Part shown: positions 6,251 through 11,914 of the stretch, in pieces
Layout of the letters: every line of letters starts with the position of its first letter
Numbering within the stretch: the stretch's first letter is position 1
Assembly (NCBI GenBank): GCA_028826165.1
Contig: JAPDFW010000095.1
Location: forward strand, 1 to 64,000
Direction: 5' to 3'
Length of the DNA stretch: 64,000 nt
DNA from: Anaeramoeba ignava BMAN
Taxonomy: Eukaryota > Protista > Anaeramoebae
The notes under the pieces: model-generated
Databases searched by the model: none
What the model was told of the DNA's origin: nothing
What the model saw: only the letters and a program-made list of their open reading frames with translations
Position numbers and translations under genes: made by a program

Positions 6251-6439
6251 GTGAATAAAAAAAAAAGAAAAATGAAAAGAAATTTTTTGAATTCATTTAA
6301 ATTGTATTTTTGAATTTATTTAAATTTTATTTTTGAATTTATTTAAATTTTATTTTTGAATTTATTTAAATTTTATTTTTTGAATTTATTTAAATTTTAT
6401 TTTTGAATTTATTCTTGATTTTAAATTTAAATTTAAATT

Positions 6440-9400
6440 TTAATCAATTTTCAAAATCTTCTTAATCTTAATAACTAAAAGCCAATTATCTCTTGGCATT
6501 TCAGGAGATTTTTCACCATAACGTTCCTTCAAAGCATCAATAGATTTTCTTGACAAACGGGAATACAATTTATGAGAAGAATCAAAATGACGACCATACA
6601 TATAAGAAGTTTCTGAATGTTGAGACATGATCTTAATAGAAACACTTGATCCTTTATCAGCTTGATGAACAGGAGCTCTTTCTTTTTCAATAGAAATAAC
6701 GCGACCCAAATAGATGGAGTTATTTTCATCCAAATTAGCAACAATTGGGGTTCCGATTCGCAGGGATCCTTCTTCAATATCAACGCCCATAATGATCGGG
6801 TCTTTTGTGTTGAAAATATAGTCTGAAATAATTGATAGTTGACAAGGAAATACGATTTCGGTTGAAAGTTTGTTTTCCTTCTCGCGTTGAAGTTGTTCCA
6901 TATAAAGCTTGAACTGGTCAAAAAGATGATAAATAATGTCTGCTGTGAAAATTTTCACCCCGCGTTTCTGGGCAAGTTCCCGCGCTTCGGGCATAACTTT
7001 GACATCGAACGCGAGAATGATTGCGTATTCTTTCTGTTTTTCAATCATGATTGAGATTTTCTCAACGTCTTTCTTGTGAACCGGTCCGATATTGATTCCG
7101 GAAACCGGGATTTTACTTTCGCGAAGAAATTCAAGAAGCGCCTCCAACGCGCCAAGTGTTGATGACTGGACATAAACTCCTTTTCCGGATTTGTCAACGG
7201 AAGAAAGCATGATGTTGAAATCTTTCATGACTTCCTGTTTTAGAAATTCAAGTTCATCCGGATCGTTCGGGTTTTTGGGGATAAGAAGAGGTGATCCTGG
7301 AACTGCAAATTCCAGCTTGGCCGCAGCGATTTTGCATCCTTGAGCGGCTTTGAGTTGTGTGTGGTGCATGTATTCTGATTTGATTCGTAATTCCTTCAAT
7401 GGCTGCGGAGTCAGAAGTGCGCGGATTGTTGTGACTATTGCGCCTTCTCTTCCGCAGATCACAATTGTGTCGCCTTGATTTAAAACGCCATTTGCTAAAA
7501 TAACGTCGATTGTTGTCCCTAATCCGTCAATGATTTTCACCTCCAATACTGTGCATTGGAGTTCTGATAAATACCGCAATGTCTTGCTCATACGTTTCTG
7601 TGTGATCTGCACAAGAAGCATCAGCAGATCTGGGATTCCTTCGCCTGTGATTGCTGATGTAGGCACAAGCGAGACGTATTTTCGGATGTTCGGGTTGTTA
7701 TAATACAACTCTGCATTCAAAGCTTCTTCGTTAAATGCGGTGATAGTGTCTTTCAGTTTTTTCTGGAAATGATCCTTGGTGTTCCGTCCTTGTTTGCGCA
7801 ATGATTGCTTGAAATCTGACCATGGATTAGCCTTCCAATCCGTCAGTCGATCAATCTTGTTCAGCGCAACAACGAAAGGTGTCTTTCGCTTCCGCAGAAG
7901 ATTTATTGATTCCTTTGTCTGTGGTTCTAATCCGTGATGGATATCCACAACCAAAATTGCAATATCGCAAAGGGAACTTCCACGACTCCGCAGATTCGCG
8001 AAAGACTCATGTCCTGGTGTGTCGATGATTAACAGCCCAGGGAGATCATATGTGTACTTGTTTTGCTTGTTTAGAGATTTTGTCTGTTTTTTAATTGTTT
8101 CGATCGGGAAATATGTTGCTCCGATTTGTTGCGTTATCCCGCCAACTTCTCCGTCTTGAACTTTGGAGTGTCGGATTTTATCAAGTAGTTTTGTGTTGTG
8201 TGTTACTGTGAAATCCCCGAGTAAAAATCGGTTGTTATGATCAATTATAAAACCGTAATAATCGCCGTATTTTGTTTTTTCAACTTTGAATGCGTAGGTT
8301 TGTATTCGTTTTTCTTCTTCTTCGATATTACTTTTTCCAATAATAACTGTGTAATTTCTTTCGCATATTTCTGGTGTTTCTAGATTTTCACTCTTTGTTT
8401 GCTCCATTGTTGAATGCAATCCTAATGAACGACTCAGATAAACAACATCCTCTGCGAATTTTTCTCTTAAACCGCCAATTATATATTTTCCTTCTTCTTC
8501 AACTCCCTTTGTTTCCAAAATTCCTTTCAGCAATTCACTTCTTGTTTGTTTTGTGTTGCATTTTAATTCATATGGAATTGAGTCTTGGTGATCTTTGTGG
8601 TATTTTGCGAAGTTGCTAATAAATTTCTGATCTTCCATTTTCTTTGTTTCTAAATAGTTTTTTCCTGTTAAATAATTTGCTGCTAAATAATTCCCTGCCT
8701 TTTTTGGGTTGTGGTAGATTTTCTGAGGTGCAAATTCCGCAGATACTTTGTATGAATAATAGTATTCTTTCCATTTTTCAGATTTTCGGAGATATTCCTC
8801 AATTGAGATATCAATAGTATCTCCGATTTTATTTCCTTTTTTTTGTTTTTGCTTTACAAAATCATTGAGTTGTGATTCCATTTCTTGTGTAAATTCTTTG
8901 CTTTTCAAATGGTGATTTTCAAGCCAAAAAACAGTTCTAATTTGGCTATTTTCTTCGTTTTGAATTTCTATTGGCTCTTTTGAAACTACTAAAGTGAGAA
9001 TATGTTCTTTATTTGCCTCAAATGATTCCTTCAAAGTGTTTGTAATTTTGAACAATTGATCATATCCTTTGTTTATTGATATGACCTTTCTTGGAGTTTC
9101 ATCATCTCCCATAAGAAGATCACCTGGTTTTATATTTTGCACTTTTTCAATTTTACCATTTGCAAGAAGAATTTTTGTATCGCGTGCTAAGCATTTTCCT
9201 GTGTCAACATGTCCCAAAATGACGCAAATTGGGGAACGAAGATTTTGTGATTGATTACTAGAATCACCTTTTGATATCGGTTTTGTTTTGGCTTGTGGCA
9301 TAGATTGGGGAAGTTGATTTGATGATGAAGTTTTATCGTTATCCTTTTCCTTTTCCTTTTCACTTTTCATTTTCGTTTTCATTATTTTCATCTTCATTTT

Positions 9401-11914
9401 CATTTTCTTTATTTTCATCTTCATTTTCATCTTCATTTTCATTTAATTCGGGTTCATCAACTAATAGCATTTCCCAACTTTCAACCACAGTATCTTGAGG
9501 TTGTTCTTCTTTTTTATCATTAACGTTATCATTTTCTTCAATTTCTTTTTGATTTTCATTTTCTTCAATTTTTTGTTCATTTTCATTTTCTTCAATTTTT
9601 TGTTCATTTTCTTTTTGTTCAATTTCTTTTTGTTCAATTTCTTTTTGTTCAATTTCTTTTTCTTCAATTTGATTTTCTTGTTTTATTTTTTCTCTTTTTT
9701 CTCTTTCTAATTGTTTTTTTGTTTTCTTTTTTGGTTTCTTCTCTAGATTTAATGTTGGTGGAACTTCTGCAGGAATTAATCCTTGTTCAATTGCTTGTTT
9801 TTTGAATAAAAGATCTTTTTTTTTCTTCATTTCTTGTTTTTTTGATAAAATTAATCCTTTTTTGCGAAGTTCTTCTTTCTTTTTTCTTTTTTGTTCTTGT
9901 TTTTTCTTTTTGATTTCGAACTGTTTTTTTCTTTCAGCTTTTTCTTTTTTTTCTCTTTCTCTTTCTTGTTTTTCTAACTCAAGGATTCTTTGTTTTTCTT
10001 CTTCTTCTTCTTTTTGTCTTTGTAAAAATTCTCTTTGTTTTTTAAGAAGAGCTTTAGATGGTTTTTTTGTTTTGACTGGTTTTTTTTCTTCTTTTTTTTG
10101 TGGTTGTTGTTTTTTTTGTTCTTGATTTTGTTCTTTTTGATTTTGTTCTTTTTGATTTTGTTTTTCTTTTTGATTTTGTTCTTGTTGATTTTGTTCTTGT
10201 TGATTTTGTTCTTGTTGATTTTGTTCTTTTTGGTTTTGTTCTTTTTGATTTTGTTCTTTTTGATTTTGTTCTTTTTGATTTTGTTCTTTTTGATTTTGTT
10301 CTTTTTGATTTTGTTCTTTTTGATTTTGTTCTTTTTGATTTTGTTCTTGTTTTTGATTTTGTTTTTTTTGCTTTTGTTTTTGTTGTTTTTTTTGTTTTTG
10401 TTTTTTTTTGATTTGATTTTTTTTGATTTTTTTGTTTCTTTTTGATTTTGTTCTTTTGTTCTTCTTGTTTTGATTCTTTTTTTTTCTGGTTGTTGTTTTC
10501 TTTTTTGATTTTGTTCATTTTCAATTATTTCTTTTTGATTTTTGTTCCATAATTTTATCAAAATCTTCATCTTGATTTCTTTTTCCTTTTTCTTTTCCTT
10601 TTCCTTTTTGTTGTTGTTTTTGATTTTGATTTTGTTTTTGATTTTGATTTTGTTTTTTGATTTTGTTTTTGTTGATTTTGTTTTTGTTGATTTTGCTGTT
10701 TTGGTTCTTCTTGTTTTGATTCTTCTTTTTTATCATCTTCTTGTTTATCATCTTCTTTTTTATCATTTTCTTTTAATTCATTTTCAATTATTTCTTGATT
10801 TTCTTCCATAATTTTATCAAAATCTTCATCTTGATTTCTTCCTTTTCTTTTTCCTTTTCCTTTTTGATTTTGCTGTTTTTGTTTTTGTTTTTGTTTTTGT
10901 TGTTGATTTTGTTTTTGTGGTTGATTTTGTTTTTGATTTTGATTTTGATTTTGTTTTTGATTTTGTTTTTGTTGATTTTGTTTTTGTTGATTTTGCTGTT
11001 TTGGTTCTTCTTGTTTTGATTCTTCTTGTTTATTATCTTCATCTTTTTTTTTATCATCTTCTTTTTTATCATCTTCTTTTAATTCATTTTCAATTATTTC
11101 TTGATTTTCTTCCATAATTTTATCAAAATCTTCATCTTGATTTTTCCTTTTTCCTTTTTCCTTTTTCCTTTTTGTTGATTTTGTTTTTGATTTGTTGATT
11201 TTGTTTTTGTGGTTTGATTTTGTTTTTGATTTTGTTTTTGATTTTGTTTTTGATTTTGTTTTTGTTGTTGATTTTGTTTTTGATTTTGTTTTTGATTTTG
11301 TTTTTGATTTTGTTTTTGTTTTTGTTGATTTTGTTTTCTTGTTTATTCTTCTTGTTTATTATCTTCATCTTTTTTTTTATCATCTTCTTTTTTATCATCT
11401 TCTTTTAATTCATTTTCAATTATTTCTTGGTTTTCTTCCATAATTTTATCAAAATCTTCATCTTGATTTCTTCTTCCTTTTCTTTTTCCTTTTCCTTTTT
11501 GTTGTTGATTTTGTTTTTGATTTTGTTTTTGATTTTGTTTTTGGGTTGATTTTGTTTTTGATTTTGTTTTTGATTTTGTTTTTGTTGATTTTGCTGTTGC
11601 TGTTTTGATTCTTCTTGTTTATCTTCTTGTTTATTATCTTCATCTTTTTTATCATCTTCTTTTTTATCATTTTCTTTTAATTCATTTTCAATTATTTCTT
11701 GATTTTCTTCCATAATTTTATCAAAATCTTCATCTTGATTTCTTCTTCCTTTTCTTTTTCCTTTTCCTTTTTGTTGTTGATTTTGTTTTTGTGGTTGTTG
11801 TTGATTTTGTTGATTTGTTTCTGTTTCTTTTTGAGTTGTATCAGTTTCTGTATCTTTTTGTTGTTGTTTTCCTTTTTGAGATTTTTTATTTTTATTATTT
11901 CTTTTTGGTGGCAT
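6440..11914 (-). CDS. eIF5B: Translation initiation factor eIF5B (IF2), intein-containing; long K/E/Q-rich repetitive N-terminus broken by apparent frameshifts
   Basis: Motifs LRSPICVILGHVDTGK/TKLLDKIR, GGITQQIGATYFP, LIIDTPGHESFANLRSRGSSLCDIAILVVD, VALNKID, VPTSAITGEG and a C-terminal YGRHFD..LYSRLSRKSIDALKE. Upstream ORFs 9360-11914 form a contiguous charged N-terminus starting MPPKRNNK. Confidence 0.95.
8195..9193 (-). mobile_element. Intein (333 aa, class-1 Cys...His-Asn/Thr+1) with degenerate LAGLIDADG endonuclease region
   Basis: In-frame 999-nt insert between GHVDTGK and TKLLD. It starts CLARDTKILLANG (block A), contains ESFEANKEHILTL (block B His) and ends YYGFIIDHNNRFLLGDFTVTHN (blocks F/G), followed by Thr. 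The internal RSELLKGILETKG...FAEDVVYLSRSLGL resembles endonuclease blocks E/H. Confidence 0.97.
10500..11760 (-). repeat. Five tandem ~270-330-nt coding repeats in the eIF5B N-terminus
   Basis: The unit KGKGKRKGR.NQDEDFDKIMEENQEIIENELKE.DKKEDDK plus a Q/N/K tail recurs near 11730, 11460, 11135, 10830 and 10570 (last copy partly diverged). Confidence 0.85.

Follow-up and report, generated by a model that had tools for sequence, protein, structure and literature searches.

An intein with a decayed homing endonuclease splits the Walker-A loop of nuclear-encoded eIF5B in Anaeramoeba ignava BMAN

In the anaerobic protist Anaeramoeba ignava BMAN, the gene for eukaryotic translation initiation factor 5B (eIF5B) lies on the minus strand of contig JAPDFW010000095.1 (assembly GCA_028826165.1), of which positions 1 to 64,000, referred to here as the window, were analysed. 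The longest open reading frame (ORF) over the locus carries, between the peptides GHVDTGK and TKLLDKIR, a 333-aa in-frame segment (CLARDTK...FTVTHN, ORF residues 84-416) that separates the Lys from the Thr of the Walker-A motif, or P-loop, of the GTPase. This insert is an intein of class 1, lodged in the Walker-A loop of a nuclear eIF5B gene, and it occupies what is termed here the GK/T site, the slash marking the point of insertion. The features that define it are as follows.

6440..9442, minus strand: main eIF5B ORF, 1000 aa
8195..9193, minus strand: intein, 333 aa, with a PI-SceI-type Hint splicing domain and a decayed LAGLIDADG endonuclease domain (from Pfam, an AlphaFold2 model and Foldseek)
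9194..9214, minus strand: N-extein half of the P-loop, GHVDTGK (ORF residues 77-83)
9155..9193, minus strand: block A (CLARDTKILLANG), with the codon of the Cys1 nucleophile at 9191-9193; aligned to PI-SceI residues 1-52, with C1 and G13 invariant
9002..9013, minus strand: block B, Asn61-Lys-Glu-His64, with N61 and H64 invariant in 50 relatives
8195..8263, minus strand: blocks F and G (DYYGFIIDHNNRFLLGDFTVTHN), whose last two residues are His332 and Asn333 (from alignment)
8192..8194, minus strand: Thr+1, the first C-extein residue and the Walker-A Thr of GxxxxGK[ST] (from translation and alignment with yeast eIF5B)

The identity of the insert is documented at the levels of profile, fold and individual residues. 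The Pfam profile Hom_end_hint (PF05203) aligns over its entire length (1-228 of 228) with residues 1-332 of the insert, at 74.2 bits (E 2.1e-20) and with a cut-off of 32.1 bits; the NCBIfam intein N-terminal model gives a weak match that stays under its cut-off. Among sequences of the Protein Data Bank (PDB), the best match is PI-SceI (E 1.8e-10), and Prp8 inteins of Cryptococcus are also recovered (E 8.5e-6). An AlphaFold2 model of the intein, built from a 50-sequence alignment, has a mean predicted local distance difference test (pLDDT) value of 92.2 and a predicted template modelling (pTM) score of 0.89, and when used as a Foldseek query it returns PI-SceI at the top (E 4e-22, TMq 0.75, reaching 0.78 among PI-SceI structures), followed by VMA and Prp8 inteins (Prp8 E 6e-9). 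Residues C1, G13, N61, H64, H332 and N333 are invariant in the 50-sequence alignment of intein relatives. All features of a class-1 intein are thus found together, namely Cys1, the block-B His, the His332-Asn333 pair, Thr+1, the Hint fold, and an insert that can be removed in frame, and the match to these features is far beyond chance.

The effect of removing the insert can be read from yeast eIF5B (PDB 3wbi), an intein-free orthologue of which residues 4-22 correspond to ORF residues 65-83 and residues 23-604 to ORF residues 417-998 (E 1.8e-206). The alignment is gap-free and colinear across the junction, and excision of ORF residues 84-416 therefore restores eIF5B with no residue lost or gained. 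The base composition of the insert (31% G+C) is lower than that of the C-extein (41%). A first-pass annotation, made from the letters of the window alone, had placed a 333-aa insert at 8195-9193 between the Lys and Thr of GHVDTGKT, had recognized Cys1, the block-B His, the terminal His-Asn and Thr+1, and had concluded that excision restores a canonical eIF5B; its coordinates prove exact to the base, the four signatures are all present (C1, H64, H332 and N333 being among the residues invariant in the 50 relatives), and the yeast alignment bears out this conclusion. It had also proposed a comparison with Hint and Hom_end profiles, and the full-length match to PF05203 answers the first of these.

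The second profile behaves differently. Between the splicing blocks lies what remains of a homing endonuclease, whose motifs can be located by alignment with the family consensus.

8309..8746, minus strand: LAGLIDADG homing-endonuclease remnant, about residues 150-295
8675-8698, minus strand: LAGLIDADG motif 1, AGNYLAAN (family consensus LGxWLGDG)
8504-8533, minus strand: LAGLIDADG motif 2, LLKGILETKG (family consensus LLAGLLDSDG)

The catalytic acidic residue is missing from both motifs, and the beta-sheet of subdomain 1 has been deleted, intact relatives having, after motif 1, strands that are absent here. Both Pfam endonuclease profiles stay under their cut-offs over the insert (Hom_end, 19.3 bits with a cut-off of 21.1; LAGLIDADG_3, 15.9 bits with a cut-off of 22.5). 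The two catalytic motifs and the complete two-subdomain core with DNA-binding sheets that characterize an active PI-SceI-type endonuclease are therefore not found here; with both catalytic acidic residues and part of the DNA-binding sheet lost, the eIF5B intein, judging from its alignment, should be unable to home.

The eIF5B intein has numerous relatives in its own genome, a 42.8-Mb assembly of 147 contigs in which at least 41 Hom_end_hint matches were found. This number, together with published work (Gallot-Lavallee et al., PNAS 2023, PMC10710043), upholds the earlier remark that Anaeramoeba is rich in inteins. Full-length relatives in this genome are 29-36% identical to the eIF5B intein by BLASTP (33-39% by the search program), and the nine that were examined all lie directly after a Walker-A Lys. 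Their hosts, named from extein motifs rather than by domain search, are three Lon-like proteases, an SMC protein, an ABC transporter, dynein (two loci), an RFC-like AAA protein and SR-alpha. In eight of the nine, GK immediately precedes Cys1; in the ninth, SR-alpha, GK and Cys1 are joined across an intron. This intron, found in the SR-alpha gene on contig C75, is a 79-nt, extremely AT-rich GT..AG sequence (1215-1293 of the extracted stretch) that lies exactly between the codon for the Walker-A Lys (GVNGVGK) and that for Cys1, and it is the only real intron read in this genome. A further intein lies in Prp8 (contig C98, from about 203279, the Prp8 ORF running from 197381 onward), with the arrangement AKWK/CLGKDT...RFLLGDFTVTHN/TAEE; it shares its FTVTHN family with the P-loop inteins, yet is inserted at a K/T junction outside any P-loop. 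Its site, AKWK/TAEE, is that of Prp8-f, which the published survey describes as a novel intein site in the Prp8 of A. ignava BMAN (PMC10710043), and which marks the genome as that of BMAN or of a nearly identical strain.

A search of public proteins scored on the intein alone returned 875 matches, the best of which are metagenomic AAA, RFC, SF2-helicase and thymidine-kinase proteins, together with one A18-like helicase of a Marseillevirus. Of these matches, 115 gave alignments over the entire intein, beginning with Cys or Ser and ending with Asn, and were extracted; in the 60 of these metagenomic relatives whose junctions were listed, a Walker-A Lys comes before the intein in every case (59 GK, one RK) and FTVTHN closes it. 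Similarity to inteins in the P-loops of Lon, SMC, SR-alpha, RFC, AAA and SF2-helicase proteins reaches E 1e-48 to 1e-58 at 31-36% identity. Both its site, after the Walker-A Lys, and its sequence kinship thus place the eIF5B intein in a GK/[ST] P-loop family. The metagenomic GK/T inteins form a very large group whose hosts look giant-virus-derived, and both acidic LAGLIDADG motifs are, by a simple motif census, retained by 40 of the 115, about a third; neither is retained by any of eight own-genome relatives, nor by the eIF5B intein.

The same position in the same factor is occupied elsewhere. A whole-protein search recovered 40 eIF5B proteins, fungal or fungus-like, in which an intein interrupts exactly this site, GHVDTGK/C...HN/TK[LV]LD, their hosts including Rhizophagus, Funneliformis, Coemansia, Batrachochytrium, Sorochytrium, Cokeromyces, Benjaminiella, Dimargaris and Tieghemiomyces, as well as related metagenomic sequences. 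For archaeal IF2, a degenerate DNA pattern for GHVDHGK-Cys was used, which gave at least 120 stretches, nearly all of them archaeal; in 43 of the first 80, the ORF runs on as C...HN/T[TS]LLD. Archaeal IF2 inteins at GHVDHGK/C are found in Thermococcus, Methanocaldococcus, Archaeoglobaceae, Desulfurococcales, Caldarchaeum and DPANN archaea, in agreement with the first-pass statement that archaeal IF2 inteins use the GK/T site. Three IF2 genes of Patescibacteria (the candidate phyla radiation) also carry inteins of 529-546 aa at GHVDHGK/C...HN/T[TKA][LI]LD, the archaeal and eukaryotic site.

The origin of the eIF5B intein was addressed by comparing these groups. Its identity to non-allelic P-loop inteins is 31-36% (160-184 bits), as opposed to 22-25% (55-112 bits) to the fungal inteins that share its site, and archaeal IF2 inteins have no significant full-length similarity to it. 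In a maximum-likelihood (ML) tree of 34 rows under LG+C20, the eIF5B intein nests among the P-loop inteins of its own genome, as sister to that of SR-alpha (88/79), and the fungal eIF5B inteins form a separate clade (100/100). Forcing the eIF5B intein to group with the fungal clade costs 9.1 log-likelihood units, and the approximately unbiased (AU) test does not reject this grouping (p = 0.136); the same test on a quick tree was uninformative, the constrained tree scoring above the free search. With p = 0.136, an independent origin is favoured and not established. Ectopic arrival in eIF5B from another P-loop host, as opposed to descent from the fungal or archaeal eIF5B/IF2 inteins, is accordingly the origin suggested by the sequence comparisons, as a favoured and not a proven one.

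Taken together, these observations suggest that a canonical class-1 PI-SceI / Hom_end_hint intein is fixed at the GK/T site of the only eIF5B gene of A. ignava, that it is constitutively spliced, and that it is an immobile, selfish remnant of the P-loop family, of probably ectopic origin; a probability of roughly 85% is given to this reading. The splicing pathway can be proposed from the conserved residues and from the established pathway of inteins. The eIF5B precursor would be translated with its P-loop split; Cys1 would carry out an N-S acyl shift at Lys-1, the resulting thioester would be attacked by the Thr+1 hydroxyl to give a branched intermediate, and Asn333, helped by His332, would cyclise and release the intein, after which an O-N shift would rebuild the Lys-Thr peptide bond, yielding GHVDTGKT and an active eIF5B. 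Such splicing is most likely constitutive and fast, and the intein is most likely a selfish remnant and not a regulator. Its persistence would probably follow from the fact that any deletion short of perfect precision would leave the P-loop non-functional. A search of the genome indicates that the eIF5B gene is single-copy, and the Walker-A Lys and Thr are parted by the insert; active eIF5B must therefore, by inference, come from spliced protein, so that the earlier proposal that GTP binding by eIF5B depends on splicing was soundly drawn.

Several points weigh against this reading, the unrejected fungal grouping in the AU test being one. The eIF5B intein is not among the three Anaeramoeba inteins for which splicing was confirmed in PMC10710043. 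Retention of the insert in RNA is inferred from the sequence and not observed, no run recorded as RNA covering the locus. Finally, a frame break at about 9360, upstream of the intein and one frame off the main ORF, leaves the full precursor undefined.

Among the alternatives, the one that fares best, while still unlikely, holds that the intein is allelic, that is, inherited or transferred from a fungal-type eIF5B lineage at the same site and subsequently diverged. Besides the AU result, it has in its favour a site identical to that of the 40 fungal or fungus-like proteins and a near-identical C-terminal block (RFLLGDFTVTHN). The FTVTHN block is, however, common to the whole GK/T family, and is therefore no mark of allelic descent; the lower identity to the fungal eIF5B inteins and the nesting of the eIF5B intein within the own-genome set, apart from the fungal clade, both argue for arrival from another P-loop protein.

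A distinctly unlikely extension of the ectopic origin is that SR-alpha and eIF5B form a recurrent donor-recipient pair of GTPases for ectopic intein transfer, acting independently in two eukaryotic lineages. The idea comes from the fact that the SR-alpha and eIF5B inteins are closest relatives in A. ignava, and that the same exchange, from SR to IF2P, has been inferred for an ancestor of Rhizophagus in the published survey (PMC10710043). A separate, more far-reaching and likewise improbable idea would have condition-dependent splicing of eIF5B gate translation initiation.

Such a gate is also the substance of a rather improbable rival, according to which the intein is redox- or metal-controlled, so that the supply of active eIF5B, and hence ribosomal subunit joining, would be gated after translation. 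Conditional splicing is documented for some prokaryotic inteins, and a split P-loop in a single-copy gene does make active eIF5B depend on splicing. The first-pass annotation had suggested a redox or metal switch on translation of this kind, a suggestion that found no support. The catalytic blocks are canonical, and no switch-specific feature stood out in the sequence, in which the only Cys residues other than Cys1 are 212 and 277, in the endonuclease remnant, and are not unusually arranged (no distances were measured on the model). The host is anaerobic, with a cytosol expected to be reducing, and inhibition by Zn2+ in vitro is a general property of inteins. Furthermore, the same genome has related inteins in at least eight further P-loop proteins whose functions are unrelated, and opportunistic insertion therefore fits better than a regulation tuned to eIF5B.

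The two remaining alternatives concern the integrity of the gene and of its transcript, and bear on the regions that surround the intein.

6440..8191, minus strand: rest of the C-extein, holding what is left of the G domain, domains II to IV and, at 6440-6442, the stop codon (Pfam GTP_EFTU, GTP_EFTU_D2, IF-2 and GTP_EFTU_D4)
9215..9442, minus strand: part of the N-extein that lies upstream of the P-loop, sharing the frame of the 1000-aa ORF; the start of the public gene model, at MPQAKT, is 47 codons in
9363..10514, minus strand: Lys/Glu-rich N-terminal region of eIF5B, 384 codons in another reading frame, ending at TGA 9360-9362 and overlapping the main ORF by about 80 nt

The 1000-aa main ORF is not the whole eIF5B gene, and the motifs KKGLILSKKQ...EQGLIPAEV and ESWEMLLVDEPE in the frame of 9363..10514 match the N-terminal regions of fungal eIF5B proteins. 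The changes of frame at 9360-9442 and further upstream possibly reflect an assembly error in a homopolymer or microsatellite, introns, or a truly shorter N-terminus. As a repair of the break, an intron from 9363 to 9258 (106 nt), the only GT..AG pair of fitting length and phase when judged by eye, was considered and rejected, its donor (GTGAAA) being weak and its composition coding-like; the same candidate further crosses sequence in which other DNA contigs show an in-frame 12-nt repeat difference. This repeat is an insertion at 9341 (TCCTTTTCCTTT, plus strand) seen in DNA contigs of two public runs, both on one sample, and it adds in-frame Lys/Glu repeat codons relative to the reference stretch. 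Public DNA contigs break at about 9360. Further upstream, as far as an ATG at 11914 (minus strand), there are five repeat units of about 270 nt (period 272 by TRF) that carry NQDEDFDKIMEE, one copy being truncated; they lie in three different frames and are embedded in indel-rich hexamer and heptamer microsatellites.

The frame break at about 9360 is what speaks for the intein being dead, the eIF5B gene then being a pseudogene or the source of an inactive protein, a reading that is very improbable. All splicing residues are intact, the 584-aa C-extein is free of stops and 55-60% identical to eukaryotic eIF5B proteins, and this is the sole eIF5B gene of the genome; in yeast, moreover, the N-terminal region of eIF5B is dispensable.

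Evidence bearing on the transcript was sought by aligning Logan contigs of public runs to 6400-9900 (3501 letters), bearing in mind that colinearity cannot prove transcription. DNA contigs of the probable source sample are colinear over 6451-9359, and a contig of run X4 (type unknown, from another sample) over 6517-9100, the C-terminal junction included; the latter has C instead of T at position 7253, a third codon position in the C-extein. No credible intein-less joint that skips the insert was found among the public-run contigs over this interval; those joints that were listed all lie in low-complexity sequence at 9384-9680 or have sides of about 20 nt, and were taken as repeat artefacts. 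Removal of the insert from RNA as a spliceosomal intron, or its being otherwise untranslated, is barely credible: although no RNA run is on record over the locus and this genome does place an intron at an intein site, as at the SR-alpha junction, the insert has the ends TGC...AAC and not GT..AG, stays open for 999 nt at 31% G+C and in phase with the exteins on either side, and encodes a confidently folded intein model with every catalytic residue conserved; the one real intron read is 79 nt long and extremely AT-rich.

The locus offers a textbook example of a nuclear gene for a core eukaryotic translation factor whose catalytic loop houses an intein, and it illustrates how such elements persist where exact deletion alone is tolerated. 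Little of this is new, since host, strain and P-loop intein cluster have all been published. What is added here is that the GK/T site of IF2/eIF5B is held by three or more intein lineages with no close resemblance to one another (that of archaea, that of fungi and the P-loop family of Anaeramoeba), that the Anaeramoeba eIF5B intein looks like an ectopic immigrant from another P-loop protein and not like an allelic descendant, and that its endonuclease is decayed, the motifs being intact in about a third of its giant-virus-like metagenomic relatives. This last observation points to viruses, and giant-virus-like metagenomic proteins may be the mobile reservoir of the GK/T family.

With regard to published systems, the eIF5B intein and its GK/T insertion site are already known and are not new. 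The survey by Gallot-Lavallee et al. (PMC10710043) names among the intein hosts initiation factor 5B (there "Transcription initiation factor 5B"), marked "BMAN only", and the intein described here is almost certainly that one; eIF5B of A. flamelloides is reported there to lack an intein. The survey also finds every Anaeramoeba intein of cluster 1 to be placed in a P-loop and the cluster to group together phylogenetically, proposes for this cluster ectopic spread between P-loop hosts, and confirms protein splicing for three other Anaeramoeba inteins only. Three eIF5B inteins had been reported from chytrids and Glomeromycota (Green et al. 2018, PMC5784728), and aIF5B of Pyrococcus abyssi has been expressed "intein free" (PMC9226500). 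The novelty implied by the first-pass annotation was consequently overrated, the host being listed for A. ignava BMAN and the site being occupied in many fungi and archaea.

The closest structural match is PI-SceI, the VMA1 intein of Saccharomyces cerevisiae (PDB 1vde, 1lws, 1jva), which shares the combination of Hint and LAGLIDADG domains, Cys1, the block-B Asn-x-x-His and the terminal His-Asn. PI-SceI is, however, a 454-aa protein with an active endonuclease and Cys+1, hosted by the V-ATPase A subunit, whereas the eIF5B intein has 333 aa and Thr+1, and is missing the two catalytic Asp residues as well as part of endonuclease subdomain 1. Archaeal IF2/aIF5B inteins occupy the homologous site, GHVDHGK/C...HN/T[TS]LLD, but differ in that only block A aligns (best E 1e-4 over 40 residues) and in their sizes, which range from 155 to 547 aa. 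The fungal eIF5B inteins, known from Chytridiomycota and Glomeromycota (PMC5784728) and found here also in Kickxellomycotina, Mucoromycotina, Blastocladiomycota and Dimargaritales, have the identical site (GHVDTGK/C...HN/TK[LV]LDKIR), the PI-SceI-type architecture and the C-terminal block, and in most of them the LAGLIDADG motifs are likewise decayed; they are set apart by their 22-25% identity to the Anaeramoeba intein, their length of 333-435 aa (median 384) and their own clade at 100/100. With cluster 1, as described in PMC10710043, the eIF5B intein shares its P-loop position, the own-genome P-loop relatives identified here all being inserted at GK/[ST].

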